Shown: positions 22,769 through 55,755 of the stretch, piece after piece
Numbering within the stretch: position 1 is the first letter of the stretch
Layout of the letters: each line of letters starts with the position of its first letter
IMG/VR virus record: IMGVR_UViG_3300023313_000001
Span: 124,001-188,000 of that record
Direction: 5' to 3' (one strand)
Length of the DNA stretch: 64,000 nt
Position numbers and translations under genes: made by a program
The notes under the pieces: generated by a model
Seen by the model: the letters and a program-made list of their open reading frames with translations, nothing else
Databases searched by the model: none
Told to the model about the DNA's origin: nothing

Positions 22769-23374
22769 ATGAGCATATATGCATTTAGTATTAAAGAAAA
22801 CTCCGAGCAATTTGGATGGAGAATATTCCCATCATATTTTACCCCTGAAGAATGTAAGCAACTGATAACTGACCATTCTAATGAAACGCCCTGGGATGGT
22901 GGAGTAGTTAATCAACCAAATGCAACCACTGATGAAAGCCAGTCTAATGTGCTCAAATCAATTCGTAATGTCACTATCAAGACTGTTACGGTTGAAACAT
23001 GTCCTTGGATATTCGATAAAATGAACTCATTAGTTTGGGGAGTAAATGAAGCCTACCAATTTGAACTGACTGGATTTATGGAAGACATGCAACTGCTCCA
23101 TTACGGAGATGACATAGGTGGTGGGCATTATAAGTGGCATCAAGACTGGGGACCTGCATACCTATCAACTCGCAAGTTAACTATCATTGTACAACTAACA
23201 GATCCCGCTGAGTATGATGGATGTCAAACAGAAGTCAGTTGCAATGGAATAGCTCCTCAAGGAATAGGGGATGTAGTTGTATTCCCATCATTCATGCCAC
23301 ATCGAGTACTTGAATTAACCAAAGGAAATCGAGATGCCCTAGTCGCATGGGTTAATGGGCCTCCATATAAATAG
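22769..23374 (+). CDS. 2OG-Fe(II) oxygenase (prolyl-hydroxylase/PKHD-like)
   Basis: HYKWHQD, RKLTIIVQL, VVVFPSFMPHRV, GNRDALVAW. Confidence 0.88.
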   Translation: MSIYAFSIKENSEQFGWRIFPSYFTPEECKQLITDHSNETPWDGGVVNQPNATTDESQSNVLKSIRNVTIKTVTVETCPWIFDKMNSLVWGVNEAYQFELTGFMEDMQLLHYGDDIGGGHYKWHQDWGPAYLSTRKLTIIVQLTDPAEYDGCQTEVSCNGIAPQGIGDVVVFPSFMPHRVLELTKGNRDALVAWVNGPPYK

Positions 23375-23740: not shown

Positions 23741-23758
23741 GTACTCGCTGAAAAATGC

Positions 23759-23947
23759 TCAGTAGACAGGATTGGATCTCTTACCTTCCACAGTAAGTCT
23801 CTCCTCTACAAAATCTCCTATCATCTGCCGTTCTGCATAGGTTCTATTCAACATATCATTATATTGTATTGAACCTCGCATGAAATACACCAACTGGATT
23901 ACGTCTTTGATAATACCACGTACTTCTCCTTGATATCGCTTAAACAT
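23759..23947 (-). CDS. gp51-like hub/tail assembly chaperone C-part, probably made by -1 frameshift from the upstream gene
   Basis: LVYFMRGSIQYNDMLNRTYAERQMIGDFVEERL; frame is open back to the T7 run at 23989-23995. Confidence 0.65.
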   Translation of the reverse strand: MFKRYQGEVRGIIKDVIQLVYFMRGSIQYNDMLNRTYAERQMIGDFVEERLTVEGKRSNPVY

Positions 23948-23982
23948 ATCACGAACATCATCAGGTGTACCATTCTTCAGCG

Positions 23983-24825
23983 TTATGTAAAAAAACTCAT
24001 TGGATTTAATGGAGTGACAATCGTCAGTCTATCCCCACAATCCTTACAATCCTGTCTAAATGTTGTATCAGCTCCCCATACTGTTATCAAATCAATAGTG
24101 TTATTGATTTGGCGTATCTGGGGCAACGGTAATACCTTCACCCAATCGTGGATGAATTCACGGCTATGAATTACTTGCGCTTCGGTATTGCCGTTAGTTT
24201 GAGCTGGTATGACGACTTTCACAATCAGACCGGCCAATTGGGACACCATCTCATTATTTATTTCTTCAGGGGTTAGCTCTCTATCAGGATCTATTGTAGC
24301 CATCATATCGACTACAGCATCATATCTCATTGGTGATATGAACACATGTTTACCATCATCCATTACGCATTTATATTCATTATTCAACCTAGTGGTGTCT
24401 AAGTTTTTAACCTGAGATATGAAAGTGTTAATAGACACATCATATTTGTGCTCCTTCGCTCCTTCACAATTATGTGTGTGAAGCACTGCAACACTATCAC
24501 CGAATGATACACTACGTAAACATATCAACAAATAATCTACATCCTTAGCTAGTAGCCTCATAGGTTTGATTACATCTGGAATACATCTAGCAAATATCTG
24601 TTTAATAGCCTCGCCTGAAAATAACATATCTGGTGTTTTAATTATAATTTCATCTAAGGCTGTCATTGGATATACATGCAATTCTCCGTTCTGAACACTG
24701 GGTGCTAACTCTCCATCATTATAGAACAATCCACTGGATGGTAACTGAAAAGTCTCTCCAGGAATTCTTCCAGACACCAAAAGTGGGTTAACAACACTAC
24801 TTGGTTGTGTGGTATTATCTATCAT
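23983..24825 (-). CDS. gp26-like baseplate hub/tail assembly chaperone
   Basis: FQLPSSGLFY, VYPMTALDEI, DVDYLLICLRSVSFG, C-terminal CKDC...NPMSFF. Confidence 0.78.
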   Translation of the reverse strand: MIDNTTQPSSVVNPLLVSGRIPGETFQLPSSGLFYNDGELAPSVQNGELHVYPMTALDEIIIKTPDMLFSGEAIKQIFARCIPDVIKPMRLLAKDVDYLLICLRSVSFGDSVAVLHTHNCEGAKEHKYDVSINTFISQVKNLDTTRLNNEYKCVMDDGKHVFISPMRYDAVVDMMATIDPDRELTPEEINNEMVSQLAGLIVKVVIPAQTNGNTEAQVIHSREFIHDWVKVLPLPQIRQINNTIDLITVWGADTTFRQDCKDCGDRLTIVTPLNPMSFFT

Positions 24826-24855
24826 TAATATTCTCCATTGTGTGTATTAGTCTAC

Positions 24856-24895
24856 TATTTATGAGGGATTAAACAAAGGACGTCCCTCATAAATA
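24856..24895. promoter_or_regulatory. Back-to-back late promoters forming a perfect 13-bp inverted repeat
   Basis: TATTTATGAGGGA-N14-TCCCTCATAAATA. Confidence 0.75.
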
Positions 24896-24923: not shown

Positions 24924-27854
24924 ATGACATCACTTACCAAACAAGAAGCTGCATTAATCGCGGATGAAATTAAGAAAGCAATGACTAAATTGCTGGTGAG
25001 TCACCAAACGTTCCTTTCAGATATGTCTAATGAGAGAGGTTCTCGTCGTCCATCCAAAGGTAAGAATGGGGAGTCCTCATCATCTAGTATGAACATCAAT
25101 CGTAGATTGACTGGGTCTATTAAAAATTTAAACTCTGCTGTTGGAAAATCGTCTGATCTGTTTGCATCTCTGAACACGCAGCTCAAACAATCCACAAAGA
25201 ATAGTAAACAGGATAATGTTGTCGGTGGTGCACAACAGCGTAGAGTACAAAAAAACCAACTTAGGTATCTCAAGTTTATGGCTCGTAGTGCCAATGATAC
25301 TAAACACTTATCAGACTCATATTCCAAATCTGCATCATCGGTTGAAAAAAGTGGTAAAAAAGTTAAAGGTGAGCTAACTACTTTTGGACAAGCCCTAGAG
25401 AAGTATGGAACTCAGTTACTATCTAAAGTTGGTGTAGGTAAGGGAGTTGCTACCATATTCTCAGACCTCCAACAGGCTATGTCTACTAGTAACATGTATG
25501 ATGTTGAAGCTACCAATGTAGCAGCGTTGCAAATGGGGATAACTGTAAAAGATTTGATATCACTACAATCATCCTATAGAACTGATGCGTTACGTTCAGC
25601 AGATGGTATTACTGCTTGGACAGAAAATCTTCGTAAATCACAATATGACCTACTAACCTTCACTGGAAATACCAAAGACGCCGCCAAAGCCGCTGCTGCA
25701 ATACGATCTACCGTAATGGATGCAGGTATATCCTTTAAAGAGGCAACTAAAGTAATAGGGTCTGGTAAAGATGGATTAGTTGGACAGTTAAAGAAATTAT
25801 CTAGTGCAACAGGGATGACTATAATGGGCCTCAATGATGGAATGAAATCTATCATATCAGGAGACGAAACTCGTTACATGCTTCAAAAAATGGATAAGAG
25901 TCAACGCGGAAAGTTTTTATCCGACCAGGCTAAATCAGCTCAACAATACACGTTACTTACCGGAAGTTGGGAGAAGGCTAGAGAGTTGGTTATAGCCCAA
26001 CAAAATGAAGGTAAAAAGACGTTCAAAGAACGTTATATTGCAGCAGCAAAACTACAAGCAGCTGCTGTTCGAACTGGGATGGGTGTTGAAGACGCTCAAC
26101 GCATGAGTACGCTCTTTATAAAAAATCCATCACAACGTAATGCTGACGAACAATTGGAGTTGACCAAGCTTCAGAGTAGATTGCACAACAACGTAAGCTT
26201 AATGACGGGAAGTGGGGATGCTCACACAGAGATGATGGGTAACGTTATTATGGACCAATTAGGTGTTAGTGACGTTGGTAACAAAAATTTAACCACATAC
26301 ACTGAGCTTAACCAACAATCTACAGAAAGACACTCTCGTCAAAATATATCAGCTATTATGGATGGTAACTCGTTAGCAAAGTCTACACTCACCATCCAAC
26401 AACAGATTTGGAACACATTAGACAATGGGTTCGTGCAGATGGTTGCTGGATTTGCTGTGCTAGCCCTAAAGGATAAAATAAACCCTCTGGAGCTATTCAG
26501 AAAGAGTGTTGATGGTACCAAAGGCGGATTTATGCGCAATGCTAAAGCAGCTAAACTACGTATGGGTAAGAGACTCGGACGAGTTGGCAAGCTTGCTGGA
26601 CTAGCAGCAGAGGGCGGCACTATTGGTAAAGCACTATTAAAAGGAATTGGTAAAGGAGGAATTGCAGGATTGGCGTCTATGGGGGTCAATGCAGCAGTAG
26701 ATTATGGAATAGACCCACACACCTCTAACCAGGCCACAGCAAAAAATGGGTTAACAGGAGCTATATCTGGAGCAGGATATGGTGCAATGATAGGTTCTGT
26801 AATTCCAGTAATAGGAACTGCTGTGGGAGCTGCTGTAGGAGGAGTTATTGGGGGTATAGTCGGATTATTAGAAGATACTAAAACAGACCGTCAATTTACT
26901 GCTGAAGCTCAACAAGCTGAACTTCATAATAAACTAGCAATATATGATGCTGAGATGACAAACGTTAAAAAACGCCAACAAGCTGAACTAGAGGGAATGT
27001 CTGACATTTTTACTCGTCGTCAAGAAGCAATGGATAATCATGACTACAAAGAAGCAGCCAGACAGCAACTCGAAATTGATAATGTAAGAGAAAGACACTC
27101 AGCTGAAATGGAGTTAATCACCAAACAACGTGCAGCTGCACAAGAATTAAGCTCTATCTATAGTGAAATGTCTAAATCAGAAGGGGACTATAGCAAATTC
27201 CAGGCTGCGTTTGCTGATGCTGACGAAATGAATTGGATTCCGTGGCAGCATCAAATAGACACAGGTGAGTTGAAAGATCAAACTGGAATGGGTGCACAAG
27301 AGCTCCTATCTAAGGTACTCCAACACGGATCCCAACTCAACATAACTGATAAGGAAAAAATGGAAATCAGTGATGCACTATTCTCAGGAGCTGAACTAGA
27401 GGGGGACAGATTCCATGATATATTCACTGCACTCAGAGAAGGTATGAAAAAAGAATATCAGCAATCGAAAACTAAACTAGACGATCGATTACAACAATCT
27501 AGTTCTGCACTTAAGGATGCTAAATCAGCCAAATCCAACTATGACAGAACCCATATTGCCCCATCAACTCCATCCAGGCTTAAGCCAGTGTTAGAAGAAT
27601 TGACGCGCCCTAACAATGCAGAGAACACAAAAAAAATGATCGACGGGTTGACATTAACCCCAGCAGAACGAACTAATGCAGACACCAACAAAGATGGAAA
27701 GTTAGGAGCAGATGAAAAACTGGCTTACATTGCTGATCTATTAGAACGCACACTTAGTGCAAACGAACGAAACTTCACTATTACCCAAGACCAAGCTGAA
27801 AAAGCGTTGGCGATAAGTCGTAAAAATAAAAAACGCGGAATGGTTGCAGAATAA
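24924..27854 (+). CDS. Tape measure protein (976 aa)
   Basis: Long Ala/Gln/Lys-rich helical protein with Gly-rich hydrophobic segment GAGYGAMIGSVIPVIGTAVGAAVGGVIGG; lies between chaperone and portal genes. Confidence 0.7.
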   Translation: MTSLTKQEAALIADEIKKAMTKLLVSHQTFLSDMSNERGSRRPSKGKNGESSSSSMNINRRLTGSIKNLNSAVGKSSDLFASLNTQLKQSTKNSKQDNVVGGAQQRRVQKNQLRYLKFMARSANDTKHLSDSYSKSASSVEKSGKKVKGELTTFGQALEKYGTQLLSKVGVGKGVATIFSDLQQAMSTSNMYDVEATNVAALQMGITVKDLISLQSSYRTDALRSADGITAWTENLRKSQYDLLTFTGNTKDAAKAAAAIRSTVMDAGISFKEATKVIGSGKDGLVGQLKKLSSATGMTIMGLNDGMKSIISGDETRYMLQKMDKSQRGKFLSDQAKSAQQYTLLTGSWEKARELVIAQQNEGKKTFKERYIAAAKLQAAAVRTGMGVEDAQRMSTLFIKNPSQRNADEQLELTKLQSRLHNNVSLMTGSGDAHTEMMGNVIMDQLGVSDVGNKNLTTYTELNQQSTERHSRQNISAIMDGNSLAKSTLTIQQQIWNTLDNGFVQMVAGFAVLALKDKINPLELFRKSVDGTKGGFMRNAKAAKLRMGKRLGRVGKLAGLAAEGGTIGKALLKGIGKGGIAGLASMGVNAAVDYGIDPHTSNQATAKNGLTGAISGAGYGAMIGSVIPVIGTAVGAAVGGVIGGIVGLLEDTKTDRQFTAEAQQAELHNKLAIYDAEMTNVKKRQQAELEGMSDIFTRRQEAMDNHDYKEAARQQLEIDNVRERHSAEMELITKQRAAAQELSSIYSEMSKSEGDYSKFQAAFADADEMNWIPWQHQIDTGELKDQTGMGAQELLSKVLQHGSQLNITDKEKMEISDALFSGAELEGDRFHDIFTALREGMKKEYQQSKTKLDDRLQQSSSALKDAKSAKSNYDRTHIAPSTPSRLKPVLEELTRPNNAENTKKMIDGLTLTPAERTNADTNKDGKLGADEKLAYIADLLERTLSANERNFTITQDQAEKALAISRKNKKRGMVAE

Positions 27855-27920: not shown

Positions 27921-29594
27921 ATGCAACCTAAGTGGACAGGATATTTTAAAGTTGTAGAGCCCCAGAGTGACACTGTAAAAGTAACAGATAACATGTCCAC
28001 TGATGCTTCTGCATACAATAACTACAGTTGGTACCAACGATTAGTCCACGGATCATCGTCACGTATATCTAGGTATCAAGAATATGATGTAATGGACCAG
28101 GATGTTGACGTATCTCGTGCACTAGACTTGATATCGGAAGAGATGACCAACCGCAACGCTAAAACTGGACTAGCATTGGATGTTAATTTAACGCTTGAAG
28201 ATGGTCGTCAAGTATCTGACAGCCTAGTTGCCACAATTCGTGTTGCACTCAAACACTGGTGTATTATGCATAAAATGAATATTAAATTATTCGACATTGC
28301 TCGTCACACTATCAAATATGGTGACCTATTTTTTAGAAAAATTGAAGGACAACAAAAATGGGAATATATTAACAGTAAACACGTTATTGCAGCAGTAGTT
28401 GACTCTGAAGATGTTACTAAAATTGTAGCCTATCAGATCCGTAAGGATGTAAAAAAGCCTAGACAGAATGCAGGCGGAAGTGTACCTGTCCACCAAGAAT
28501 ATGAAACTGAAATCGTCCCAGCCCCTGAAGTTGTCAGATTCACCCTAAACGATGATATGTCAGATATGGCTCCATTTGGGGAGTCTGTACTCTCACAAGT
28601 GTATCGTGTACAAAAACAAAAAGAACTACTAGAAGATGCGATTGTAATTTACAGAGTCCAACGAGCCCCAGAGAGACGGGTATTTTACATTGATGTTGGG
28701 AAAATGCCACCACAACGAACTAAACAATATTTAGAAACTATCAAAAACGAAATCCGTCAAAAGAAGGTTCCATCAATTAATGGAGGAACTGCTAACATTG
28801 ACTCCACCTATAATCCTCAAAGTATGTCTGAAGACTTTTACTTCGCTCAACGCCCCAATGGTGCAGGTTCTAGAGTGGAAACACTTCCAGGTGGCCAAAA
28901 TTTGGGAGAGTTATCTGACTTAGAATATTTTAGATCCAAAGTAATGGAAGGTCTTCGAATTCCTCCATCCTATATCCCAAATTTCGAAACCCAAGATTCT
29001 GCTGGGGCATTCAATGATGGTAATGTTGGAACAGCATATATGCAAGAGATCCAATTTTTGAAGTATGTCGATAGATTGCAACAGCATATCAACGAGGTAC
29101 TGGATATAGAGTTCAAACGATTCATGAAGGATTTAGATATCCACATTGATGAAACTATGTATCAAATTAAACTCCCTCAACCTACAAACTTTGAAAAATA
29201 TAAAGAAGCTGCTGTCGATGGTGAGTTACTTACACAATTTGGTAATGCGGATGGTGTAGAATACATGTCCAAACGATTTGTGATGTCGCGATATTTAAAA
29301 CTATCTCCAGATGAGATTGCTACCAACGAAATGTTGTTACGACAGGAGCGTGGAATGGATCCCCAAGACGGAAAAGCCTTGGTTAAATTATATAATCCTG
29401 ATCTCATGGATATGGAGGCTCCTGAGGAACCTGACTCCCCTGGGGGTGGCTTTGGTGGGGGTGGTGGCTTTGGTGACGGTGGGCTGGATGATGATATGGA
29501 TGACGATGAACCCGCTGACGATACTAGTGCAATAACAGATAAAGCATCTGAGGATACTACACCAACAGATACAAAAGACGCCAATACACCATAA
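27921..29594 (+). CDS. gp20: Portal protein
   Basis: LLEDAIVIYRVQRAPERRVFYIDVGKMP; EDFYFAQR...VETLPGGQNLGELSDLEYF. Confidence 0.95.
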   Translation: MQPKWTGYFKVVEPQSDTVKVTDNMSTDASAYNNYSWYQRLVHGSSSRISRYQEYDVMDQDVDVSRALDLISEEMTNRNAKTGLALDVNLTLEDGRQVSDSLVATIRVALKHWCIMHKMNIKLFDIARHTIKYGDLFFRKIEGQQKWEYINSKHVIAAVVDSEDVTKIVAYQIRKDVKKPRQNAGGSVPVHQEYETEIVPAPEVVRFTLNDDMSDMAPFGESVLSQVYRVQKQKELLEDAIVIYRVQRAPERRVFYIDVGKMPPQRTKQYLETIKNEIRQKKVPSINGGTANIDSTYNPQSMSEDFYFAQRPNGAGSRVETLPGGQNLGELSDLEYFRSKVMEGLRIPPSYIPNFETQDSAGAFNDGNVGTAYMQEIQFLKYVDRLQQHINEVLDIEFKRFMKDLDIHIDETMYQIKLPQPTNFEKYKEAAVDGELLTQFGNADGVEYMSKRFVMSRYLKLSPDEIATNEMLLRQERGMDPQDGKALVKLYNPDLMDMEAPEEPDSPGGGFGGGGGFGDGGLDDDMDDDEPADDTSAITDKASEDTTPTDTKDANTP

Positions 29595-33049: not shown

Positions 33050-33079
33050 AAAAGCCCGCATATAATGCGGGCTTTTTTT
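33050..33079 (+). terminator. Rho-independent terminator after the capsid gene
   Basis: AAAAGCCCGCAT-ATA-ATGCGGGCTTTTTTT. Confidence 0.9.
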
Positions 33080-33181
33080 AATCAACAAGGTAATAGTGGG
33101 GGCAAACACGGCAATACCGTAGAATGTTATATCAATGGCACATATAATAACATAGATACATTAATTGGAATTATAATAAGT

Positions 33182-34807
33182 ATGAGCTACCCACTAAGAT
33201 TGAAAAACATTGGTATAACGTTAATTGATCAATACACAACCGCAAAAGCTCACCACAGAATGAGATGTGACTCATGTAACCACGTATGGTCTGCCACTCC
33301 CATATCCAAACTACAAAACTACAAAAAATACAAAACCAACGGGTGTCCTGCATGTCATACTCACCGAAAGCGAACATTAGCTGATAAGATAAATCGTAAA
33401 AATATATCCAAAATGGAATCGTTGGGTTTCTCCATACAAAGTGAATACACTACATATAAGTCACCGATAGTGGTACGTAATAATAACTGTAATCATACTT
33501 GGACTACTACTCCAGAACGTATAATAGGATCTAATGTAAAATGTAAAATATGCAACGATTTAATCAAACAAACGAGGTTTACCATCCAAAATGCCAAACG
33601 CAAACAAACTTTCAACGATACAGCATCTGATTGGGAGCGCTACAAATCAGATGTACGCAAAAAAACAGAGCAACAGTTCATCCAACACCAATCCACACTT
33701 AATCCGAACAACCATCCTCGAGGTTTGGCTGGGTTGGAAGGGGTGTATCAACTAGATCACATTATCTCTGTGAAATGGTGTTTTGAGAATGATGTACCCT
33801 ATGATAAATGTAGTGATGTATCTAATTTACAATTCATACCGTGGCAACAAAACCTGCATAAAAAGCACCGAATGATAACAGACTATATACCCAAATCAAT
33901 CCAACCATTCTTCATAGATAATCACAGTTCAGCAAATTGTTTATTTGGCATACGTAAACTATTAACAGATAATGATATTATATTTCAGAAAGATGTACGT
34001 GTGTTGAACCCCTATAAGGTAGATATATTCATACCATCTACCGACACAGCTATACGTGTGTATGATATCAACACTGAATGTGAACAAAACATAATGTCCA
34101 CCAACATTCAACGCAACATCATTAAGATAGCAGAAAAACGGAATATTAGATTGATACAATTATTCAGTGATGAATGGATATCCAACCCAGAATTAATCGC
34201 AAGTAAAATACTACACATATGTAAAATGGGTACTACTCAGACTAGAATTCATGCTAGAAAATGTACCATACGCGAAATTAACTCATCTATCAAAAATGAA
34301 TTTCTAAATATGTATCATATACAAGGAACCGATAGATCACAAATATCAATCGGAGCTTATTATGGTGATAAATTAGTGTCTGTCATGACCTTCTCCAAAC
34401 CCAGAAAGATGATGGGACGAAGCCCAGTAGCAGGAGTATGGGAATTGAGTAGGTTGACTACTGATACCCATTTTAGAATACCAGGCATTGCATCCAAACT
34501 GTTAACTTATTTTAAACGCAACCATCGTTGGTCGAAAATTTATAGTTATGCTGACGCTAGGTGGAGCATTGGTAATGTGTATGAACAATTGAAATTTGTT
34601 AAAACACATCACAACAAACCATCTTACTGGTATGTTGTGGATGGTGTACGAAAACATAGATGGGGGTACCGTAAGGATTCTATACGAGAAAGATTTCCAC
34701 ATGTGTACCATAAATCTAAAACTGAGTATGAAATGATGTTAGAATTAGACATAGATCGTATATGGGATGCGGGTACAATCTTGTATCAAATAAATCGTAA
34801 ACAATGA
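33182..34807 (+). CDS. Free-standing endonuclease: Zn-ribbons + HNH + degenerate Vsr-like + Mom/GNAT-like domain
   Basis: CDSCNHVW/CPAC ribbons; LDHIIS...NLQFIPWQQNLHK; IHARKC...HIQG...WELSRL...SYADARWS...RIWDAG. The ORF-track start lies inside the terminator, so the start was moved. Confidence 0.72.
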   Translation: MSYPLRLKNIGITLIDQYTTAKAHHRMRCDSCNHVWSATPISKLQNYKKYKTNGCPACHTHRKRTLADKINRKNISKMESLGFSIQSEYTTYKSPIVVRNNNCNHTWTTTPERIIGSNVKCKICNDLIKQTRFTIQNAKRKQTFNDTASDWERYKSDVRKKTEQQFIQHQSTLNPNNHPRGLAGLEGVYQLDHIISVKWCFENDVPYDKCSDVSNLQFIPWQQNLHKKHRMITDYIPKSIQPFFIDNHSSANCLFGIRKLLTDNDIIFQKDVRVLNPYKVDIFIPSTDTAIRVYDINTECEQNIMSTNIQRNIIKIAEKRNIRLIQLFSDEWISNPELIASKILHICKMGTTQTRIHARKCTIREINSSIKNEFLNMYHIQGTDRSQISIGAYYGDKLVSVMTFSKPRKMMGRSPVAGVWELSRLTTDTHFRIPGIASKLLTYFKRNHRWSKIYSYADARWSIGNVYEQLKFVKTHHNKPSYWYVVDGVRKHRWGYRKDSIRERFPHVYHKSKTEYEMMLELDIDRIWDAGTILYQINRKQ

Positions 34808-38856: not shown

Positions 38857-39936
38857 ATTAAAAAAATCACACACCAGGAATATGTTAATTGGATTCGCGT
38901 TAATAGACCTGAATATGAGGTAGTTGACCAGTACATCAACACCTCTACGAAAATAACCCACAGACATATTCCAACTAACCATACTTGGATGTGTTCTCCT
39001 GATAAATTCAAACGTGGAGTGTCTCATCCATATATCTCCAGAAAAACTCCAATGAGGGTAAGTCAGGATGATTATTGTGAATGGGTGAAAACAAATCGTC
39101 CAGAGTTTAAAGTATTGGGAACATATGTAAATATTAAAACAAAAATTCTTCACGTTCACACACTAACATCTACCTTATGGAATTGCACTCCAAATAAGTT
39201 CAAGAACTACCACAACCCTCCATCATTCACCAACAACGATCGTATAACTAATGAATCATACGATAAATTTTTAATAGACAATAACATTGAATTAGAACGA
39301 GTTGGGAATGTAACACGTAAGATGAACATACTAGAACATAAATCTACAAGCACAGGCGTTCGTGTTAATGTACGCCCAAGCACCATCTACCTAAACAGAC
39401 GTTATGATATAAGCAAAATACGCAATAAATCAGATTATGTAATGTGGTTAAAGACTCACAGACCAGAGTATGAACTGATTGGGGAATATACTACATCTCA
39501 TACTAAAACTATCCACAAGCACATCCCTACAGGAGTAGAATGGAATGTCAAACCCAATAATATTCAACAAGGTCAATGTAGTCCGCATCTATCAACTAAT
39601 GGATATTCAAAACGATCCATACAGTGGATGAATTTCATCAGCCAACAAGAAGGAATTGATATACAGCATGCTGAAAATGGTGGAGAGTACACTATACCAA
39701 ATGTAGGTAAGGTTGATGGATATAATGCTGACCATAACATAGTATTTGAGTACCACGGTGACTTCTGGCATGGTAACCCTGCAATTTACAACCCAACAGA
39801 TACGAATCCGATAAGTCATAAAACGTATGGTCAATTGTATGAGCACACTAAGATCCGTGATAACAATATTGTGGAACAAGGCTACACGCTAATTACGATT
39901 TGGGATAGCCAACTGGATTATATTCTGCAACCATAA
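38857..39936 (+). CDS. Free-standing Vsr/PD-(D/E)XK-like endonuclease with N-terminal repeats; probable ATT start
   Basis: W...NRPE(Y/F) repeats; KVDGYN...VFEYHGDFWHGNP...GYTLITIWDS; frame open from 38848, AGGAG 6 nt before ATT 38857. Confidence 0.7.
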   Translation: MKKITHQEYVNWIRVNRPEYEVVDQYINTSTKITHRHIPTNHTWMCSPDKFKRGVSHPYISRKTPMRVSQDDYCEWVKTNRPEFKVLGTYVNIKTKILHVHTLTSTLWNCTPNKFKNYHNPPSFTNNDRITNESYDKFLIDNNIELERVGNVTRKMNILEHKSTSTGVRVNVRPSTIYLNRRYDISKIRNKSDYVMWLKTHRPEYELIGEYTTSHTKTIHKHIPTGVEWNVKPNNIQQGQCSPHLSTNGYSKRSIQWMNFISQQEGIDIQHAENGGEYTIPNVGKVDGYNADHNIVFEYHGDFWHGNPAIYNPTDTNPISHKTYGQLYEHTKIRDNNIVEQGYTLITIWDSQLDYILQP

Positions 39937-41518: not shown

Positions 41519-42649
41519 ATGGTACATCGTAATAGGTTTATTACTAAATCTACAAAGGTGCACAATCACAAATATGATTATTCATTTGTTGAGTACAAAA
41601 ACACCCACACTCACGTAACCATCGTGTGTCCAAAACACGGAAAATTTTCCCAACTACCCATGTGTCATGTGAGAGGTGAAGGGTGTGCCCAATGTTTTGG
41701 TAACACTAGAAAAACCACAGAAGAGTTTATACATACAGCCTCTCAAATTCACAAGGGAAGGTATGACTATTCGTTGGTAGAGTATATAAATGTTAAAACT
41801 AAAGTTGACATTATTTGCAAACACCATGGGGTATTTAAACAGTCGCCAGACCACCATATTAATAAAAAAGGTGGGTGTGCTAAATGTGCGGGTAATGTTG
41901 TTAAAACTACCCCCGAATTTATATCAAAAGCCTTAAAAATCCACGGAGCTGCATACGATTATTCTGAAGTTACATACATCAATAGTAAAACACCTGTGCG
42001 GTTGAAATGCTCTAAGCATGGGATATTTACAATCACACCAGAGCAACATATACTCAAACATGGTGGATGTGGCAAATGTTCACCCACATTTCCCAGCAAT
42101 ACTACTAACTTTATTCAACGTGCCACAAACGTACATAATCACAAATATGATTATTCATTAGTTGAGTATAAAAATATCGACACTCCAATAACTATAATCT
42201 GTCCAAAACACGGAAAATTTACAACATCTCCCAAAATACATTTAAGAGGATCTCAATGTAAACAATGTTATTTAGATCAGAAAGTAGGATCATATACTGT
42301 AGATAGATTTAGATGCGATCCTGCGTTAGCTCAATCATCAGGATATGTATATGCAGTGGAGTTAACAGATTTGTCGTCCACTAAATTTATCAAGATTGGT
42401 ATATCCACCAACTATAAAAAACGCATCAATCAATACGTTAAAATGAACCCAAATGTATTACATTTACATAAATCCACTTTAAAAGATGTTTTTGGTACTG
42501 AACAACAACTATTGCAATTGTTGGCAAATGAAAAATATGATCCCCAAAACAGTTTTGGTGGACATACTGAGTGTGTCCAGTACAATGATTATACTATAAA
42601 TACTATAAACTCAACATTTAACAACCTGGTGGAACGATGTCAAACATAG
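41519..42649 (+). CDS. Free-standing GIY-YIG (T5orf172-like) endonuclease with four Cys/His repeats
   Basis: 4x H..(K/R/A)YDYS.V.Y.N..T.V...C.(K/H)HG.F...P..H....C..C; GYVYAVEL...FIKIGISTNYKKR. Confidence 0.78.
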   Translation: MVHRNRFITKSTKVHNHKYDYSFVEYKNTHTHVTIVCPKHGKFSQLPMCHVRGEGCAQCFGNTRKTTEEFIHTASQIHKGRYDYSLVEYINVKTKVDIICKHHGVFKQSPDHHINKKGGCAKCAGNVVKTTPEFISKALKIHGAAYDYSEVTYINSKTPVRLKCSKHGIFTITPEQHILKHGGCGKCSPTFPSNTTNFIQRATNVHNHKYDYSLVEYKNIDTPITIICPKHGKFTTSPKIHLRGSQCKQCYLDQKVGSYTVDRFRCDPALAQSSGYVYAVELTDLSSTKFIKIGISTNYKKRINQYVKMNPNVLHLHKSTLKDVFGTEQQLLQLLANEKYDPQNSFGGHTECVQYNDYTINTINSTFNNLVERCQT

Positions 42650-43419
42650 AAACGTACTTTTATGATGAACAGTTTAAACGATATGCTCTACAGTTTAACG
42701 CAATCTTCAGTGGATTGCAAGTAATGGTTGGCAAATCAGCAACTTCAGATGAAAAATTAATTTCAGTACCGATCATCTATGGGTCGCAAGATCGAGTAGC
42801 ATCGGCCGCAGCCCATGGACACACTCAAAACAAACACCTGAGAGTTCCCATGATGTCGTCTAACTTGGTTAATTTTGATATAGCTAATGATAGAATGAAA
42901 GGCACTGGTGCTACAAAACGTGAAGTATTTGTTCCATTGGGTGGAGTTCTTCCAAATGATGCCAAAGTAGTTCGTACCCGTATGGCAGTTCCGTACGATT
43001 TAACGTTCGATTTAAGCATATACACCAGCAATAAAGATCAGCAATTTCAGATACTGGAACAGATACTAGTGTTGTTTGATCCTATTCTCCAAATTCAAAC
43101 ATCAGAAGCACACTTAGATCCCACTAAAATATCAACTGTTGAAATTATCAGTATTAACCCAGAAGAATCATTTCCACCTGGAACTGAATCACGTGTAATT
43201 GTTACTACAATACAGTTTAAAATAGACGCATACATCACCATCCCAGCCACAGTTAAAACTGACGTTGTACAACAGATATACGCCCGCATATCCACTATAT
43301 CAGATGCTCACGTAGGCATAGTCCAATCAGATGGTACTGCAAACGCGGATATCCCTGCGTTGTATGATGAGTTAGGAATTGAACCAACCATAATTGCCAC
43401 TGCATTTATTGATAACTAA
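42637..43419 (+). CDS. gp15: Tail terminator/sheath stabiliser
   Basis: YFYDEQFKRY, VPIIYG, VPYDLTFDLSIYTSNKDQQFQILEQILVLFDP. Confidence 0.88.
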   Translation: MSNIETYFYDEQFKRYALQFNAIFSGLQVMVGKSATSDEKLISVPIIYGSQDRVASAAAHGHTQNKHLRVPMMSSNLVNFDIANDRMKGTGATKREVFVPLGGVLPNDAKVVRTRMAVPYDLTFDLSIYTSNKDQQFQILEQILVLFDPILQIQTSEAHLDPTKISTVEIISINPEESFPPGTESRVIVTTIQFKIDAYITIPATVKTDVVQQIYARISTISDAHVGIVQSDGTANADIPALYDELGIEPTIIATAFIDN

Positions 43420-45173
43420 GTTTGCTCCCAGCCCCAAACATCATTCCCGCAGTCCCATATTCGGTCATAGTTATTGACTTGCATATTTTCCCACTCAGTC
43501 ATGGTAGAATCAAACGTCGCTAGCTTGTCTTTAAGTTTATGTTTCTGAAAAACGTTCCTAGACATCAATATATTGGTATCACCTTGAATGTTAAAGTAAA
43601 AATAATTAGGTTTTGATGTGTGGGAATAAGTAAATCCAAGCTGTCCATATAATCCACCTGTATTCCAGCGCTTATCAGAATACGTTATAATTGATTTGGG
43701 GTGCTGTGATTTTAAGAAATGTTTAAATAATCTACTGGCTCCTCCCACCACTCCACAACCCATTCGGTTACTATACCGAAGTAACTCATACTCATAATTT
43801 TTGGAAAACCGACTCTTCCCGAAAGTCATACATGCAACAATTTCACCATTGTGGGATAATCCATAATTATATCTTGATCCACACGACCCCTGAATATGAT
43901 TGGCTGATAGAAAGTCTCCTTTCTCCTTAACGGTTAACTCCACTATATTACACTGTCTCGCATAAATGCGACTTGATAAACCTAATAGATTACGTATACG
44001 TGATTTACATATATCATTATTGTACACCCATTCTGATGAAAATATTTGAACTAATCTCACACCAAGCTTGTTACACATATCAGTTTTATTAATGTGGTAT
44101 CTACTGTTTTTACCAGCCAGCTCACTATGCCAACAGACTCCATTATACTCAATAGCGATGTTTAAATCGGGTATGTATATGTCTAATTCCTGTGGAGCAA
44201 TAACGTTTCTAGTGTTAGATATAACTGTTTCCGAGTAAATGACTTTAATAAACGCCAATATTTCAGACTCTGCTACAGATGTAGCAGATTTGTTGAAACT
44301 AATATTAGATCCTTCTGTTATAGTATGGATGTAAGGAAGCGTAGTGTGTAATATGTGTGCTAGTTCAGATTTTGATAAATTATACTCCTTTACAATATCC
44401 TCCACCCAAGACCTGTTAGTTAATATAGTAGATGGATCAACATCCGCATACTGTTTTCGGAGGTCATCTAACACTTCACTGAACCGCTGTGACTTGGTGA
44501 TATTGTGTTTCTGTAGATTTGCTCTTACAAAATACGTGCTAGTATTGTGGCTATCTACCAGTTGATCAATAGTTTTATTGTTAATGATGTATTCGTTATA
44601 TAAGTAATCATAGCTATCAAATAGTTTACGTAGGTGTGGATCCACCATACTCCCAGCGAAAGTGGTTGCACCATATCGTCTTAGGTTGGTGATAGCAGAC
44701 TTTGCTGCTGCTACATCATCTGTGCCATTTTTAACTTTAGTAGCTCTAATTTTAGCTGCTATCGTTGGGTCTTTAGCTGGAATTTCAACTCCATATCTAG
44801 CCATATTGGTGATGGATGCTTGGGTTCTGTTGTTGAAATTTTCGTCACCGTATCTGAGTTTTTTCGTCTCTTTTACACGTTTCACATTATTAGGATCCTT
44901 CCAAGCACAATTATGACTGCAATACTGTTTGAATACACTATTTCGATAATCATAATTAGTAACATTATCACACATACCACATGCAGGCCTGGCAGTATGA
45001 CCATCCATCAGCACTCTGATTTTTAGCTTCATATCGTCACCTTCAATAAAATCTGTTGCATCATGTATTAATGAACAGACCCCAGGATTTTTATCTAATA
45101 TACTTTGGAACTTAGGATTTAACTTATGTTTGGATGTTATTATGTTTATATTACGAAGAATGTCCAAGTTCAT
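43416..45173 (-). CDS. Free-standing endonuclease, Vsr-like + Mom/GNAT-like fusion
   Basis: CGMC/YCSHNC, RYG repeats, ELDIYIPDLNIAIEYNGVCWHS, IYARQC...YELLRY...GGASRL...TYSDKRWN...RIWDCG. Confidence 0.78.
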   Translation of the reverse strand: MNLDILRNINIITSKHKLNPKFQSILDKNPGVCSLIHDATDFIEGDDMKLKIRVLMDGHTARPACGMCDNVTNYDYRNSVFKQYCSHNCAWKDPNNVKRVKETKKLRYGDENFNNRTQASITNMARYGVEIPAKDPTIAAKIRATKVKNGTDDVAAAKSAITNLRRYGATTFAGSMVDPHLRKLFDSYDYLYNEYIINNKTIDQLVDSHNTSTYFVRANLQKHNITKSQRFSEVLDDLRKQYADVDPSTILTNRSWVEDIVKEYNLSKSELAHILHTTLPYIHTITEGSNISFNKSATSVAESEILAFIKVIYSETVISNTRNVIAPQELDIYIPDLNIAIEYNGVCWHSELAGKNSRYHINKTDMCNKLGVRLVQIFSSEWVYNNDICKSRIRNLLGLSSRIYARQCNIVELTVKEKGDFLSANHIQGSCGSRYNYGLSHNGEIVACMTFGKSRFSKNYEYELLRYSNRMGCGVVGGASRLFKHFLKSQHPKSIITYSDKRWNTGGLYGQLGFTYSHTSKPNYFYFNIQGDTNILMSRNVFQKHKLKDKLATFDSTMTEWENMQVNNYDRIWDCGNDVWGWEQT

Positions 45174-45324
45174 TTTAGATATGTTCCAGTTACCGTGTCA
45201 GATGAGTATTTATACATACAATTATATATTACTTTTTGAATACCAACAACATAAATATATTTCTACAGGTAACACCGTTTTTGTTGGTCGAACTAACTAT
45301 CAGCATACACAAAGGAGAAAAATA

Positions 45325-47082
45325 ATGCCTACACTTATATCACCAGGAGTATCCGTCACAGTAACTGATGAGTCATTCTACGTCCCGGCATCAGCCCCTA
45401 CAGTTCCTATGATAATCATAGCTACTGCAGAGAATAAATTACAACCTAATGGAATTAGTGCTGCAATAGGAACTCAAGAACATGATGTTATTCGAACTGT
45501 AACTTCACTAACTCAAAGTTCACAACTTTATGGGATTCCGAAATTCTTACAGACTGTAAGTGGTGAAGCTCAGCATGGAGACGCACGCAACGAGTATGGA
45601 TTGCTAGCATTAAACCAATTCTTAGGAATAGGTAATCGTGCGTATGTAGTCCGAGCAAACGTGAATTTAAACGATGACAGAAACGACATCATCAACATGT
45701 GGCTAGCCAGAACTAATGCAGCTGCTATCAATATTGAAGTACTATCCCAAGAATTCATTAACGAATTTAATGCTGCTAATGGGTATGTTACAGGCAATCC
45801 CCTATTCAAAGAGACTATTACTCGAGTAGAACTAGTTACACTAATGAACCAGGTAATGGTTGCTGTGTATGACAGTTATAACTTTAATAGCACTATTTTT
45901 GAAACAGATTTCGAGTCTAACCACAACCCACTGCTAGGTGGCACGGCTGCCCTCAACGTGTATGATGCAACATACACTACTGTAGTAGCATCGTTCCTAG
46001 GGTTTGAGGGAGCTGCTCTTGACTGGGAAACTAACAGCTTGGGATCGTTTGTTGGTCATACTACCGAATGGCTACCATCAGAAGCAAATACATTCTTGTC
46101 GGGCTTAGCTGATGACTTCGCATTCACTGTTGAATTTCTTAATTCAACAAGTCTAGGTGCAAATGATCCAGCTCGTCGATCAGCCATCGTTACCGCATTA
46201 CAAGCAACTGTAAATTCCCCAGATATTAGATCTGAAGCATACGAATTCAACTTAGTCTTATGTCCAGGATACCACGAACTCGTTGATGAAATGGCTACCT
46301 TAGTAACCGATATTTCGAATGAAGCTGTGGTAATAGCAGATTCTCCAATGAACATGGATCCTGATGCTGTTGTAGTATGGATGGATGATCCAGTCAGTGG
46401 TCGAGTATACAACGCAAATGTTGCATACTACTACAGTCATGGGTATGGCTCTAATTTAGATGGCACCAACGTTCTCGGAGCAGCATCTGGAGTTGCATTG
46501 CGTACCATTGCATTTAGTGACGATACTACTAGTGCAGTTTGGTTTGCACCTGCTGGTGCCCAACGTGGCGTAGTCACTGGCGTATCTCAAATGGGTTATT
46601 ACACTGGAATTGCTGGATCAGCGACCCAGTTCAATGAAGCGGTACTTAACGTAGGTCAACGCGACAATATGTATAAGGACCCTACCAAACTAAACCCAAT
46701 AACATTTTTACCAGGTCGTGGTATTGTAGTGATGGGTCAAAAAACGTCTCCAGCAACCGCTAGCGCACTAGATCGTATAAATGTTGTTAGATTGATGGCT
46801 CACATCAAACGTCAATTACGCAAAAATACATTTGCGTTTGTTTTCGAACCTAACGATCAGTTAACCAGAGATAATCTCAAAGCGATGGTGGACAACTTCC
46901 TAGGAGATTTGGTTGTTCGTAGAGGCTTATATGATTTCGCCTCGGTATGCGATGAGTCAAATAATACTCCAGACAGAGTAGATCGAAATGAAATGTACAT
47001 AGACATAGCACTCAAACCTGTTAAGGCAGCCGAGTTCATATATGTGCCAATCCGCGTTCTATCAACTGGTGCTAGTTTGTAA
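45325..47082 (+). CDS. gp18: Contractile tail sheath protein (585 aa)
   Basis: MPTLISPGVSVTVTDES, WFAPAGAQRG, MGQKT...SALDRINVVRL, FVFEPND, CDESNNTP, KPVKAAEFIY; RBS AAGGAG and CATAAATA 45250 fix the start. Confidence 0.95.
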   Translation: MPTLISPGVSVTVTDESFYVPASAPTVPMIIIATAENKLQPNGISAAIGTQEHDVIRTVTSLTQSSQLYGIPKFLQTVSGEAQHGDARNEYGLLALNQFLGIGNRAYVVRANVNLNDDRNDIINMWLARTNAAAINIEVLSQEFINEFNAANGYVTGNPLFKETITRVELVTLMNQVMVAVYDSYNFNSTIFETDFESNHNPLLGGTAALNVYDATYTTVVASFLGFEGAALDWETNSLGSFVGHTTEWLPSEANTFLSGLADDFAFTVEFLNSTSLGANDPARRSAIVTALQATVNSPDIRSEAYEFNLVLCPGYHELVDEMATLVTDISNEAVVIADSPMNMDPDAVVVWMDDPVSGRVYNANVAYYYSHGYGSNLDGTNVLGAASGVALRTIAFSDDTTSAVWFAPAGAQRGVVTGVSQMGYYTGIAGSATQFNEAVLNVGQRDNMYKDPTKLNPITFLPGRGIVVMGQKTSPATASALDRINVVRLMAHIKRQLRKNTFAFVFEPNDQLTRDNLKAMVDNFLGDLVVRRGLYDFASVCDESNNTPDRVDRNEMYIDIALKPVKAAEFIYVPIRVLSTGASL

Positions 47083-47112: not shown

Positions 47113-47151
47113 TATAAATACCTCAATAAAGTGATTTATTGAGGTATTTTT
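47113..47151 (+). promoter_or_regulatory. Late promoter overlapping a 15-bp hairpin that covers the downstream RBS (may also terminate sheath mRNA)
   Basis: TATAAATA 47113-47120; AAATACCTCAATAAA-GTGA-TTTATTGAGGTATTT 47116-47149. Confidence 0.75.
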
Positions 47152-47153
47152 AT

Positions 47154-48752
47154 ATGCAGGAAACGATACCATGCCAGATATGTGGAAAACACATGAAATG
47201 TATTGGGTGGAGACATTTACAACAACACAACACCACAGTTGACATATACAAACAACAATTTCCACAATCTCCTTTAAGGTCAGAAGCATCTACAGCTAGA
47301 AAATCGAAGTCTGCAAAACTTGCAAACGCCTCACGCAAGGGAGTAGCTAGATCTGATGTTGTGAAAACAAAAATATCACAAGCAAATAAAGGGAAGGATG
47401 CTTGGAATAAAGGCATAGGTATGTCTGACACTCAAAAACAAACACTTTCACAAACCAAGAAAGACCAATACGCAAATGGATCTACTATCCACTGGAATAC
47501 AGGCAATATAACTCCAAACGACGTCAAGAAAAAAATATCAGAAACAGCACTATCCCAATGTCGTACATACAGTGAACCTAGTAAACAAAAAAGACAATCT
47601 ACTATGCAGCAAAAATACGACGATGGATGGGTTCATCCTAGTCATCGTCCAGAGGTGCTTCAGCAACGCAAAAAAACAATGTTCGAACGATACGGCGTAG
47701 ATAATTTTATGCAACAACACATCAACCATTCGGTATTGTTAAAACTTAACGACCGTACCTGGTTAGAAGACCAACACATCACCCAACATAAACCAATCAC
47801 TCAAATTTGTAAGGATTTAGGATTACATTGGAAAAACAGCAATGCTATGGTTAAATCCCGGTTGCTTAAATTTGATATACCACAACAATATGACTTCTCA
47901 TGCTCTTATCCTGAACGTGAACTTAGAGACCTATTAACGGAATGGAATATACCCTTCATAGGGAATGATAGGACTCAGATTAAACCCAAAGAATTGGATA
48001 TATACATTCCATCCAAGTCAATAGCTATTGAATATTGTGGATTGATATGGCACTCGGATGCGTTTGTAGATAAGAACTACCACAAATTAAAAATGGAGCT
48101 ATGTGCTGCAGTAGGAATTAAGTTAATTACTATTTTTGAAGACGAGTGGTTGCATTGTCGTGATATAGTGATAAGTAAACTTCAACAGATACTTGGAATA
48201 TCAAACGATCAACGTATTTTTGCTCGCAACTGTAGTGTTATAGAAATTGAACACCAAACTGCTAAAGAGTTTCTGAACACTAATCACATTCAAGGATATG
48301 GACCATCTAGTATCAACTTAGGGTTGCATTATAATTCGGAATTAGTGGCAGTGGCAGCATATAAACGTGACGGATCCAGTGACTTTATACTAAACAGATT
48401 TGCAACATCGTGTAGTGTGATTGGCGGATTTACTAAGCTTGAACGGTACTTTGATCGTAATTACCATCCTACAATGGTGTCAACATTTGCTGACATGAGA
48501 TGGAGTATTGGAGACTTATACAAAAATACTGGATACACCTTAGTTAACCTGTTGCGTCCAGATTATGCATACATCGACAAATCTTCATTCACTAGAATAC
48601 ATAAATTCAACTTTCGACACCACAATTTACATAATATGTTGGACGTATACGACCCATTACTTAGCGAAACCGAGAATACCAGAGCTAATGGGATACACCG
48701 AATTTATAACTGTGGTTTAATGAAGTTTCAACGTACTAATATGTCCGAATAG
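47154..48752 (+). CDS. Free-standing endonuclease: C2H2 finger + NUMOD3-like + Vsr-like + Mom/GNAT-like
   Basis: CQICGK...HLQQH; KISQANKGKDAWNKG; ELDIYIPSKSIAIEYCGLIWHS; IFARNC...TFADMRWS...RIYNCG. Confidence 0.78.
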   Translation: MQETIPCQICGKHMKCIGWRHLQQHNTTVDIYKQQFPQSPLRSEASTARKSKSAKLANASRKGVARSDVVKTKISQANKGKDAWNKGIGMSDTQKQTLSQTKKDQYANGSTIHWNTGNITPNDVKKKISETALSQCRTYSEPSKQKRQSTMQQKYDDGWVHPSHRPEVLQQRKKTMFERYGVDNFMQQHINHSVLLKLNDRTWLEDQHITQHKPITQICKDLGLHWKNSNAMVKSRLLKFDIPQQYDFSCSYPERELRDLLTEWNIPFIGNDRTQIKPKELDIYIPSKSIAIEYCGLIWHSDAFVDKNYHKLKMELCAAVGIKLITIFEDEWLHCRDIVISKLQQILGISNDQRIFARNCSVIEIEHQTAKEFLNTNHIQGYGPSSINLGLHYNSELVAVAAYKRDGSSDFILNRFATSCSVIGGFTKLERYFDRNYHPTMVSTFADMRWSIGDLYKNTGYTLVNLLRPDYAYIDKSSFTRIHKFNFRHHNLHNMLDVYDPLLSETENTRANGIHRIYNCGLMKFQRTNMSE

Positions 48753-51239: not shown

Positions 51240-51827
51240 ATGGCTACAATCAACAACATGGGTATTCCTGGAGTTGGAACAGGGATCCTTCAACCAAAAC
51301 TTAAAAACAGATGGCGTGTGACGTTCATCGGTATAGGTGCCGAAGGAGCTAGTTCTCAACCGTTATCTATGCAAGCTGTAACTATCACTAGACCTAGCTT
51401 AACATTTCAGGAAGTCGAATTACATCGATACAACTCTCGAGCGTATGTTGCTGGAAAGCATGAGTGGGAAATGTGCCAAGTTACATTGGAAGACGATGTT
51501 ACAGGATCTGCATCAAAGGTGATTAGTGACCAGATCTCGAAGCAACAATTCTTAATTGGCGCCGAAGGTCCATTCCTCGGAGCTGCTGAAGAAGGTTCCA
51601 TTTACAAATTTGCCACAAAAATAGAGATGCTGGATGGACAAGAACAATCAATCGAACGATGGGTGCTACAAGGTTGTTTTATTCAACAAGCAGACTACAC
51701 TGATCTAGATTTTGGTACAAGTGAAGCAGTAATGATCAACTTATCTCTTCGATTTGACCATGCGTTCCAAGAAATTGCTGGATACTCTGCAGGAGAAGGT
51801 GTGGCCCTTGGTGGTGCTGGCGCATAA
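51240..51827 (+). CDS. gp19: Tail tube protein
   Basis: ILQPKLKNRWRVTF, ITRPSLTF...YNSRAYVAGKHEW, ERWVLQGCFI, LSLRFDHA; late promoter CATAAATA 51184. Confidence 0.85.
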   Translation: MATINNMGIPGVGTGILQPKLKNRWRVTFIGIGAEGASSQPLSMQAVTITRPSLTFQEVELHRYNSRAYVAGKHEWEMCQVTLEDDVTGSASKVISDQISKQQFLIGAEGPFLGAAEEGSIYKFATKIEMLDGQEQSIERWVLQGCFIQQADYTDLDFGTSEAVMINLSLRFDHAFQEIAGYSAGEGVALGGAGA

Positions 51828-51875: not shown

Positions 51876-51914
51876 ATACCTGCATAAATACCATAAATAA
51901 CTGGAGAAGTGTAC

Positions 51915-55005: not shown

Positions 55006-55755
55006 ATGAATAAAACTCTCAACACGTTATTAGCTCACTTCACTTCGGAACAAAACTGGTGGGACCAGTTCCATCTAGCATACCTGATGAATCCCACAGC
55101 ATTCATAGAAGACTGTATCACACTAAATACAGCCCCTATACAATTACTTCAGCATCAACGTGACCTCGTTGAAATATATGAATATCATGACCATGTGTAT
55201 GTTGCATCTGCTAGACAAGTGGGGTTATCTACAATAAACAATGCATTTATGCTTTGGCAATGTGTATTCCAACACGACACATCTATTCAAATTTTTGCAC
55301 AAGACGATACTGGAGCATGTGATCTGAGAACAATACGGCAAATGTATGACTCTCTACCTAACCAAGTACGAGCTAGAGTGAAAATTCAACTTCATAAAAC
55401 TACTCATGGAATACTATCGTTCGACAATGGGTCCTCTATCACTGTACTGTCAACCAGTTTCAATGCTCTGCATGGCATCCCACCAGCAGATGTACTACAC
55501 ATAGTACGTCCATCTATGTTTTCTACCAAAAACTTACAAGAAGTAGAACAAGCGTTGATACACCCAACTGTTCATGCTGGTGGATCAATACAAGTCACCG
55601 ATTGCATCAATGCTAACCTAGAGTTAATAAACACGCATGCTATGTTTGCTTGTAAAATTCCATGGAACGTGGTGCCTGGACGAGATCAACAATTCAAAGA
55701 CGACACTATTCGCAGAATAGGACAGCAAGCCTGGAATGACGACTATGGGGATTAA
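55006..55755 (+). CDS. Degenerate paralog of the terminase large-subunit ATPase domain
   Basis: SARQVGLST (Walker A K->L), FDNGSSI, VLHIVRP at the Walker B position, IPWNVVPGRDQQFK. Confidence 0.75.
   Translation: MNKTLNTLLAHFTSEQNWWDQFHLAYLMNPTAFIEDCITLNTAPIQLLQHQRDLVEIYEYHDHVYVASARQVGLSTINNAFMLWQCVFQHDTSIQIFAQDDTGACDLRTIRQMYDSLPNQVRARVKIQLHKTTHGILSFDNGSSITVLSTSFNALHGIPPADVLHIVRPSMFSTKNLQEVEQALIHPTVHAGGSIQVTDCINANLELINTHAMFACKIPWNVVPGRDQQFKDDTIRRIGQQAWNDDYGD

Follow-up and report, generated by a model that had tools for sequence, protein, structure and literature searches.

How does a phage gene that ends beside a run of T residues make its product, or its products, and what role would they play? 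The question is raised by a gene of the T4 gp26/gp51 family on the minus strand of a 64,000-nucleotide stretch of DNA (positions 124,001 to 188,000 of IMG/VR virus record IMGVR_UViG_3300023313_000001; hereafter the window), part of a viral record of 229.5 kb that is ~65% complete and derives from a microbial mat metagenome. A 280-aa open reading frame (ORF) ends one codon past the T run, and a second ORF of 62 aa lies in the −1 frame behind it. The original prediction, made from the letters of the window, was that a −1 programmed frameshift fuses the two in the manner of the G and GT proteins of phage lambda. Long-tailed phages characteristically conserve the G/GT frameshift, and conserved −1 frameshifting in tail assembly chaperone (TAC) genes is already known as a class (Xu, Hendrix and Duda reportedly described it in 2004); T4, the best-studied contractile-tail phage, has to our knowledge no recognised G/GT equivalent. 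Here we find a slippery site that is kept in one phase across widely divergent relatives and whose use would extend a gp26-like protein into a gp51-like one.

The putative slip site and its conservation

The gene, its slip site and its predicted products occupy the following positions.

23759..24825, minus strand: whole putatively recoded gene; trans-frame product of 355 aa (279 frame-0 and 76 frame −1 residues), the predicted long, gp51-like form
23983..24825, minus strand: zero-frame ORF (P0001), 280 aa, the short, gp26-like hub assembly chaperone as assigned with Pfam, PHROG and AlphaFold2
23989..23995, minus strand: slippery heptamer T TTT TTT, phased X XXY YYZ; the single codon ACA separates it from the TAA at 23985-23983
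23759..23989, minus strand: −1 extension of 76 codons (Y I T L K ... P V Y) plus TGA, a predicted helical tail resembling Gp51_C
23759..23947, minus strand: 62-aa ORF reported by gene callers, wholly within the −1 frame

The 280-aa protein belongs to the gp26/gp51 family by its match to PF12322 (T4_baseplate; 48.8 bits against a gathering cut-off of 24.5, E 9.1e-13), which covers positions 41-218 of the 219 in the profile, and it falls in phrog_150, annotated "baseplate hub." The original prediction had read T TTT TTT (23995-23989) as an X XXY YYZ site, the −1 frame as open from there into the 62-aa ORF, the products as 280 and ~355 aa, and the ATG of the small ORF as lacking a clear ribosome-binding site; direct reading and translation of the minus strand agree with each of these statements. 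The 280-aa ORF ends ATG(24000-23998) AGT(23997-23995) TTT(23994-23992) TTT(23991-23989) ACA(23988-23986) TAA(23985-23983), which places one TTT in the P site (23994-23992) and the other in the A site (23991-23989) in the phase of that ORF. The codon after a −1 slip is TAC (23989-23987), from which 76 codons are open to a TGA stop at 23761-23759, yielding 355 aa, and no Shine-Dalgarno (SD)-like motif precedes the ATG at 23947. The source sample was also assembled independently in Logan (depth ~190), and that assembly is identical over 23883-24382, T7 run included, with zero differences. Searches of the locus itself returned little: there were no megablast matches to the phage collection, no terminator 3′ of the chaperone gene in a terminator scan, no Rfam matches within 23650-24950, and no coverage of the locus in an RNA run from the same sample.

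The heptamer by itself would carry no evidential weight, because T7 runs are not unusual in the window (20 observed against 26 +/- 5.7 expected by chance); the evidence lies in its in-phase conservation across relatives. A scan of viral contigs returned 586 relatives, of which 80 were taken (26–45% identity) and 79 were assessable, and the 80 distinct ORFs that we compared comprise the window, six named jumbo phages and viral contigs. The closest named relatives are the jumbo phages RsoM2USA (36% identity by tblastn), XacN1, Xoo-sp13, PA5oct, Atu_ph07 and the PBECO4/Rak2 group. All six named phages (24–38% identity) have T TTT TTT or T TTT TTC in phase at the homologous NPxxFF motif, 1–10 codons ahead of the stop and followed by a −1 extension of 70–82 aa; by tblastn the extension is found in XacN1, Xoo-sp13 and PA5oct-like phages, always −1 relative to the hub ORF. 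Among the viral contigs, a slippery site close to the stop codon, followed by a −1 extension of 68–84 aa, is present at 79/79 assessable loci. The heptamer at the stop is canonical and in phase in 78 of them, the remaining locus (L037) reading G TTT TTT (ACG TTT TTT ATG).

Conservation is also seen in the choice of codons and in how the reading frames end. Each of the 80 distinct genes has a slippery heptamer in phase and a conserved −1 extension of 68–84 aa; most of the heptamers are T TTT TTC or T TTT TTT, and three are A AAT TTT. The P-site Phe codon is TTT in 77/77 cases (TTT makes up 70% of Phe codons elsewhere in these genes), and the codon ahead of it ends in T, again in 77/77. Nearly all database homologues (n = 119, 236–329 aa) terminate at NPxxFF plus 1–3 residues, and none of the 119 is an in-frame fusion of ~350 aa. 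Two homologues that end LF instead (L090 and L091) have C CTT TTT A and retain the conserved −1 extension. The +1 frame in relatives mostly closes within fewer than 25 aa, and amino-acid conservation in the −1 frame starts at the slip site, 5′ of the ATG of the window's small ORF (alignment A4). The original prediction had proposed conservation of the T run and of the −1 overlap in homologues as one check, and the comparison of 80 distinct genes bears it out. As judged from these alignments, the pattern shows that selection at the nucleotide level keeps a slippery site in one phase.

A few genes depart from the canonical heptamer. Vi01 (L099), L037, L090 and L091 have non-canonical slip sites and keep the conserved −1 tail, which suggests that re-pairing in the A site, or of a single tRNA-Phe, may be the essential step.

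How the two frames would be joined

It is highly probable from this conservation that some form of recoding joins the two frames, and ribosomal −1 frameshifting is its likely form. Most ribosomes would stop at the TAA at 23985-23983 and release the 280-aa gp26-like protein, while a minority would move one base backward on U UUU UUU (23995-23989), where both tRNA-Phe would re-pair perfectly. After the slip, translation would continue for 76 codons in the −1 frame and yield a 355-aa protein with a helical tail matching the C-terminal domain of T4 gp51 (Gp51_C). The predicted trans-frame junction (…NPMSFF-YITLK…) would appear as the tryptic peptide LTIVTPLNPMSFF running into YITLK.

Many relatives also carry RNA structure where a frameshift stimulator would be expected to lie. 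The 60–70 nt 3′ of the heptamer fold better than shuffles (mean z ~ -1.8) and average -16.6 kcal/mol, compared with -10.6 for control windows within the same ORFs; in about half of the relatives the hairpin is significant, and pairing starts a median of 2–5 nt past the heptamer. Two results run counter to a frameshift in this gene and family. The window has neither a stimulatory structure 3′ of the heptamer (z -0.04, +0.84) nor an SD-like element 5′ of it, and folding against shuffles likewise found no downstream hairpin in the nearest relatives of the window gene. In addition, the signal is not universal among all distant family members, because the member in phiRSL1 (389 aa, below the Pfam cut-off) has neither a heptamer nor a −1 tail. 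The lambda G/GT frameshift works without a stimulatory element. We infer a ribosomal slip of low efficiency; efficiency is probably low in this phage because the window and its nearest relatives lack downstream structure.

The identical 355-aa product would result if RNA polymerase, rather than the ribosome, slipped on the T run and inserted an extra U, and since both routes predict the same protein, sequence alone cannot tell them apart. Such transcriptional slippage would fit the T7 run of the window, the T8 or T9 runs of 7/80 relatives and the missing stimulatory hairpin downstream in the window. However, the run is only T6 in 49/80 genes and T5 in two CTT TTT variants, and in three genes the site is A AAT TTT, where no long homopolymer occurs. 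The X XXY YYZ phase is fixed in every canonical case; tandem slippage by the ribosome depends on that phase, slippage by the polymerase does not, and a hairpin stands at the usual distance of a frameshift stimulator (median 2–5 nt) in about half of the relatives. Because of the short T runs, the A AAT TTT cases and the fixed phase, we favor slippage by the ribosome and consider slippage by the polymerase unlikely. Homopolymers are also error-prone, and one added T would fuse the frames, as expected if the window held a sequencing or assembly error or a recent pseudogene of an in-frame 355-aa gene. This explanation is barely credible: the same frame relation holds in 80/80 distinct relatives from many studies and platforms, in-frame fusions are missing from all 119 homologues, and the T7 run is repeated in the independent ~190x assembly.

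A further alternative is that the two ORFs are independent genes, the 62-aa ORF being a free mini-gp51 that starts at ATG 23947, perhaps by re-initiation after the TAA. Gene callers and RefSeq do annotate such small ORFs apart, an ATG is present in the window, and the TAA lies 36 nt 5′ of it. The −1 tail is recorded as a small protein of its own in S-PM2p208, KVP40.0327, XacN1 ORF316, Xoo-sp13_287 and PBECO4 gp526; such separate ORFs are labeled "gp51," "predicted ORF" or "hypothetical," the tail is not annotated in PA5oct, and several large ESM-Atlas metagenomic clusters consist of such ORFs of 58–62 aa. The internal start codon lacks conservation. An SD-like motif precedes the first −1 frame ATG in only 5/80 genes and is missing in the window, and that ATG is more than 30 codons past the slip site, or missing, in 42/80 genes, so that the conserved first helix would be lost. 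The −1 frame is open 5′ of the slip site for a median of only 8 codons (80 genes). Two independent genes would leave the conservation of the heptamer and its phase without a reason, and the homologous tail of T4 belongs to the gp51 chain itself. Separate genes are thus a very improbable account, and independent initiation of the small ORF is unlikely from the distribution of start signals. Because conservation runs from the slip site, 5′ of ATG 23947, the 62-aa ORF is most likely the distal part of the −1 extension and not a separate gene.

Kinship with T4 gp26 and gp51

Both T4 gp26 (208 aa) and T4 gp51 (249 aa) match PF12322, the family of the window gene, over the full length of its profile, although their identity to the window protein is only 16–20%. 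The two T4 proteins differ at the C terminus, where gp51 has ~48 further residues, named Gp51_C (PF28602) in newer Pfam (Pfam 38). The −1 extension has zero BLASTP matches to T4 gp51, and the relation is visible in profile–profile comparison only. A profile of 76 −1 extensions matches a profile of 92 gp51 tails in hhalign with E 1.4e-5 and probability 80%, compared with a best value of 0.018 for 30 column shuffles and with 0.035 for the reversed control. The whole trans-frame profile aligns with the gp51 profile through both C termini (E 5.8e-8, probability 94.7%). Among the 30 ESM-Atlas clusters nearest to the extension, five are "putative Gp51" with Gp51_C (score 0.92) and the other 25 are unnamed viral clusters of ~60 aa. 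The description of the pair as gp26-like and gp51-like in the original prediction is upheld by the PF12322 match and by this tail homology. It is well supported by the profile comparisons that the predicted short product has the architecture of gp26, with the domain ending shortly after the conserved FF, and the predicted long product that of gp51, in which a Gp51_C tail follows the domain.

What T4 encodes in two divergent paralogous genes, the window would encode in one gene with a frameshift. T4 gene 26 ends GAG TTC TTT GAG TTA CTA TAA, with no slippery site, and is followed by gene 25. There are two PF12322 genes in T4 and one each in XacN1, PA5oct, Atu_ph07, PBECO4, S-PM2, HTVC008M, KVP40 and Vi01; 7/8 of these single-gene genomes have the frameshift signal, and the site in Vi01 is non-canonical. 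The zero-frame ends of four of them read as follows.

S-PM2: TCT TTT TTC GCA TAA
HTVC008M: AGT TTT TTT TAA
KVP40: GAT TTT TTC GTA TAA
Vi01 (Salmonella phage): GAA ATT TTC ATT TAA, non-canonical

In each of these four phages the −1 tail is ~55–60 aa long and has the gp51 …P(W/Y/F)ER… motif, which is degenerate in Vi01; by these features Vi01 probably carries the same signal. The mini "gp51" ORFs S-PM2p208 (57 aa) and KVP40.0327 (55 aa) resemble the window's small ORF in position, in their −1 relation to gp26, in the in-phase T TTT TTC and in their likeness to the C terminus of gp51. RefSeq describes them as a separate "gp51 baseplate hub assembly catalyst," and no slippage or join is annotated; the KVP40 entry notes that the small ORF resembles 40 residues of the T4 gp51 C terminus. 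We found no paper that reports frameshifting among gp26/gp51 genes or accounts in this way for the mini "gp51" ORFs, subscription journals being largely outside the search.

A maximum-likelihood tree of 39 family members places T-even gp26 (98/97) and gp51 (100/99) as sister clades (93/85); together with the frameshift-type members from S-PM2, HTVC008M, KVP40 and Vi01 they fall within a group supported at 100/100. The frameshift-type genes of jumbo phages form a clade on the opposite side of the tree, whose root is by midpoint only. The simplest history suggested by this midpoint-rooted tree would be an ancestral frameshift that was replaced by duplication in the T-even lineage. Under this scenario T-even phages would have swapped the frameshift for two genes, gene 26 encoding the short form and gene 51 the long, historically "catalytic," one. 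According to a 2010 review by Leiman, gp26 and gp51 are both hub assembly chaperones and gp51 is missing from the particle (PMC3004832).

Neighboring genes and comparison with lambda G/GT

The AlphaFold2 model of the 280-aa short form (pLDDT 90.2) may resemble known tail assembly chaperones in part of its length. In an exhaustive comparison with 48,161 representative chains (VIA-align), the top three matches are three solved tail assembly chaperones, all over model residues 11–118. Foldseek against the PDB returned nothing (TM ~0.1), and structure searches of BFVD and the Atlas return the PF12322 family only, the nearest ESM-Atlas cluster being PF12322 at TM 0.79. Four residues, H118, C120, C260 and C263, are invariant or nearly so among 57 homologues (alignment A3) and stand on paired β-hairpins in the model (window ~24472-24466 and 24048-24037, minus strand; the first pair is CPxC in other relatives). 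They probably form a zinc ribbon that, in the model, would link two distant parts of the chain. The −1 extension is modeled as a helical hairpin (pLDDT 93; helices 10–38, 44–48 and 52–70). Complex prediction for the extension with the tail tube protein (51240..51827) gave a score of 0.00, which counts neither way.

The chaperone gene is separated from its neighbor, a divergent 976-aa ORF, by a 98-nt gap.

24856..24863, minus strand: T4-late-promoter-like box CATAAATA, 31 nt 5′ of the chaperone gene ATG
24888..24895, plus strand: mirror CATAAATA box, 28 nt 5′ of the divergent 976-aa ORF
24924..27854, plus strand: 976-aa ORF, a tail tape measure candidate that points away from the chaperone gene; the portal gene (27921..29594) comes next

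The two boxes lie back to back in this gap, within a perfect 13-nt inverted repeat (24856-24868 and 24883-24895). YATAAATA occurs 26 times in the window against 15.6 expected, a count reached by 0/100 shuffles, and mostly just 5′ of structural genes; by this placement we infer that the boxes would be T4-type late promoters. The 976-aa ORF has a glycine-zipper segment at 604–665, and its 30 nearest ESM-Atlas clusters include 23 of TMP_3 and 4 of PhageMin_Tail (score 0.91). The proteins encoded at the corresponding position in PBECO4 and PA5oct are structural components of the virion, and the ORF has a weak, C-terminal-only match to PBECO4 gp524. It has no tblastn matches among phages and no significant BLASTP similarity to the positional equivalent in RsoM2USA. 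Its identification as the tape measure protein is a lead only. The original prediction held that the pair abuts the tape measure gene, and it is accurate insofar as this candidate does adjoin the chaperone gene, though divergently and with an identity that stands at the level of a lead.

The window also contains T4-type structural genes, including the portal, a prohead protease, the major head protein and the terminase, as well as a sheath gene (45130..47082) and the tube gene (51240..51827). Directly after the tube gene, a 493-aa ORF (51909..53390, plus strand) has a tube-like domain in its C-terminal half only (phrog_4542, residues 265–466) and is a second, extended tube paralogue. Two adjacent ORFs (55006..55755 and 55758..57443, both plus strand) each match large-terminase PHROGs, and the N-terminal part of the second also matches helicase-loader and primase-like families; one possibility is a terminase gene that is split or interrupted, for instance by an intein or intron. 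The 3′ end of the chaperone gene faces a convergent 2OG-Fe(II) oxygenase gene (22769..23374, plus strand; PF13640, phrog_61), which is of auxiliary-metabolic type and lies within the structural region. Among the head and tail genes are at least six large ORFs (315–585 aa) that match HNH/homing-endonuclease PHROGs (phrog_3339, 559 and 681), apparently free-standing and forming an unusually dense set.

33065..34807, plus strand: HNH/homing-endonuclease ORF
38989..39936, plus strand: HNH/homing-endonuclease ORF
41519..42649, plus strand: HNH/homing-endonuclease ORF
43416..45173, minus strand: HNH/homing-endonuclease ORF
47139..48752, plus strand: HNH/homing-endonuclease ORF
49505..51181, minus strand: HNH/homing-endonuclease ORF

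If the window gene worked like lambda G/GT, the short form would be abundant and the long form rare, as are gpG and gpGT; both would chaperone the tape measure and hub at tail initiation, and neither would remain in the virion. By analogy, we put a working likeness to G/GT at slightly better than even. Several observations pull the other way. The N-terminal 120 residues match PF12322 only, and no Pfam TAC family, at E up to 10, and a PDB sequence search with profile A3 returned no TAC and no meaningful match. The gene is divergent from the tape-measure candidate, whereas a TAC gene lies upstream of the tape measure gene; the arrangement of a gene between tube and tape measure on one strand is not seen in the window, where the tube gene is 27 kb away. 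Finally, the 976-aa ORF has no significant BLASTP similarity to T4 gp29. The canonical tube–G–T–tape measure order does occur in KVP40, which has the tail tube gene, gp26, the mini "gp51" and a 656-aa ORF in succession, and a long ORF also follows in S-PM2; the similarity of KVP40.0326 to T4 gp29 is not significant. The equivalence to lambda G and T proposed in the original prediction is plausible and finds support: the frameshift signal is conserved and the best structural matches are TACs, whereas a sequence match to a TAC family and the canonical gene order are missing.

A broader reading would take the gp26/gp51 family as supplying the tail assembly chaperone pair long sought in the T4 superfamily as a whole, with the frameshift ancestral and resolved by duplication in T-even phages alone; we give this an even chance. 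The same holds for its corollary, that the frameshift is still used by Rak2/PA5oct/XacN1-like jumbo phages, cyanophages, pelagiphages, KVP40-like phages and probably Vi01-like phages. What gp26 and gp51 do in hub assembly has been described only in vague terms (PMC3004832). If the broader reading is right, the two proteins gain a mechanistic model in which the ratio of short to long chaperone acts on the tape measure, and the "catalytic" behavior of gp51 is explained as that of a counterpart of the rare GT form. The family would then offer a natural example of gene duplication replacing a frameshift. Thousands of ~60-aa "gp51" or hypothetical ORFs in databases would be mis-called fragments, and a systematic annotation error would be corrected in cyanophages, KVP40-like and jumbo phages and large metagenomic protein clusters. 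The window and its relatives would also add U UUU UUY beside a stop codon as a widespread frameshift site of bacterial viruses, useful for training frameshift predictors.

The closest known systems are lambda gpG/gpGT, HK97 gp13 and P2 E/E+E′, and the window gene both resembles and departs from them. The length of its protein is about double that of a typical TAC, there is an extra, probable zinc-ribbon domain, and the heptamer is U UUU UU(U/C) rather than G GGA AAG. As in all three systems, the gene is small and late and has a slippery heptamer close to its 3′ end, and as in the lambda G/GT class the predicted outcome is two products with a common N terminus, one short and one extended at its C terminus in the −1 frame. 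The class and the window family alike keep the signal across very divergent homologues, and in both the gene lies beside a long gene that is tape-measure-like. The T4 homologues of the window gene match the G/GT class as well, being chaperones of which gp51 is not part of the virion.

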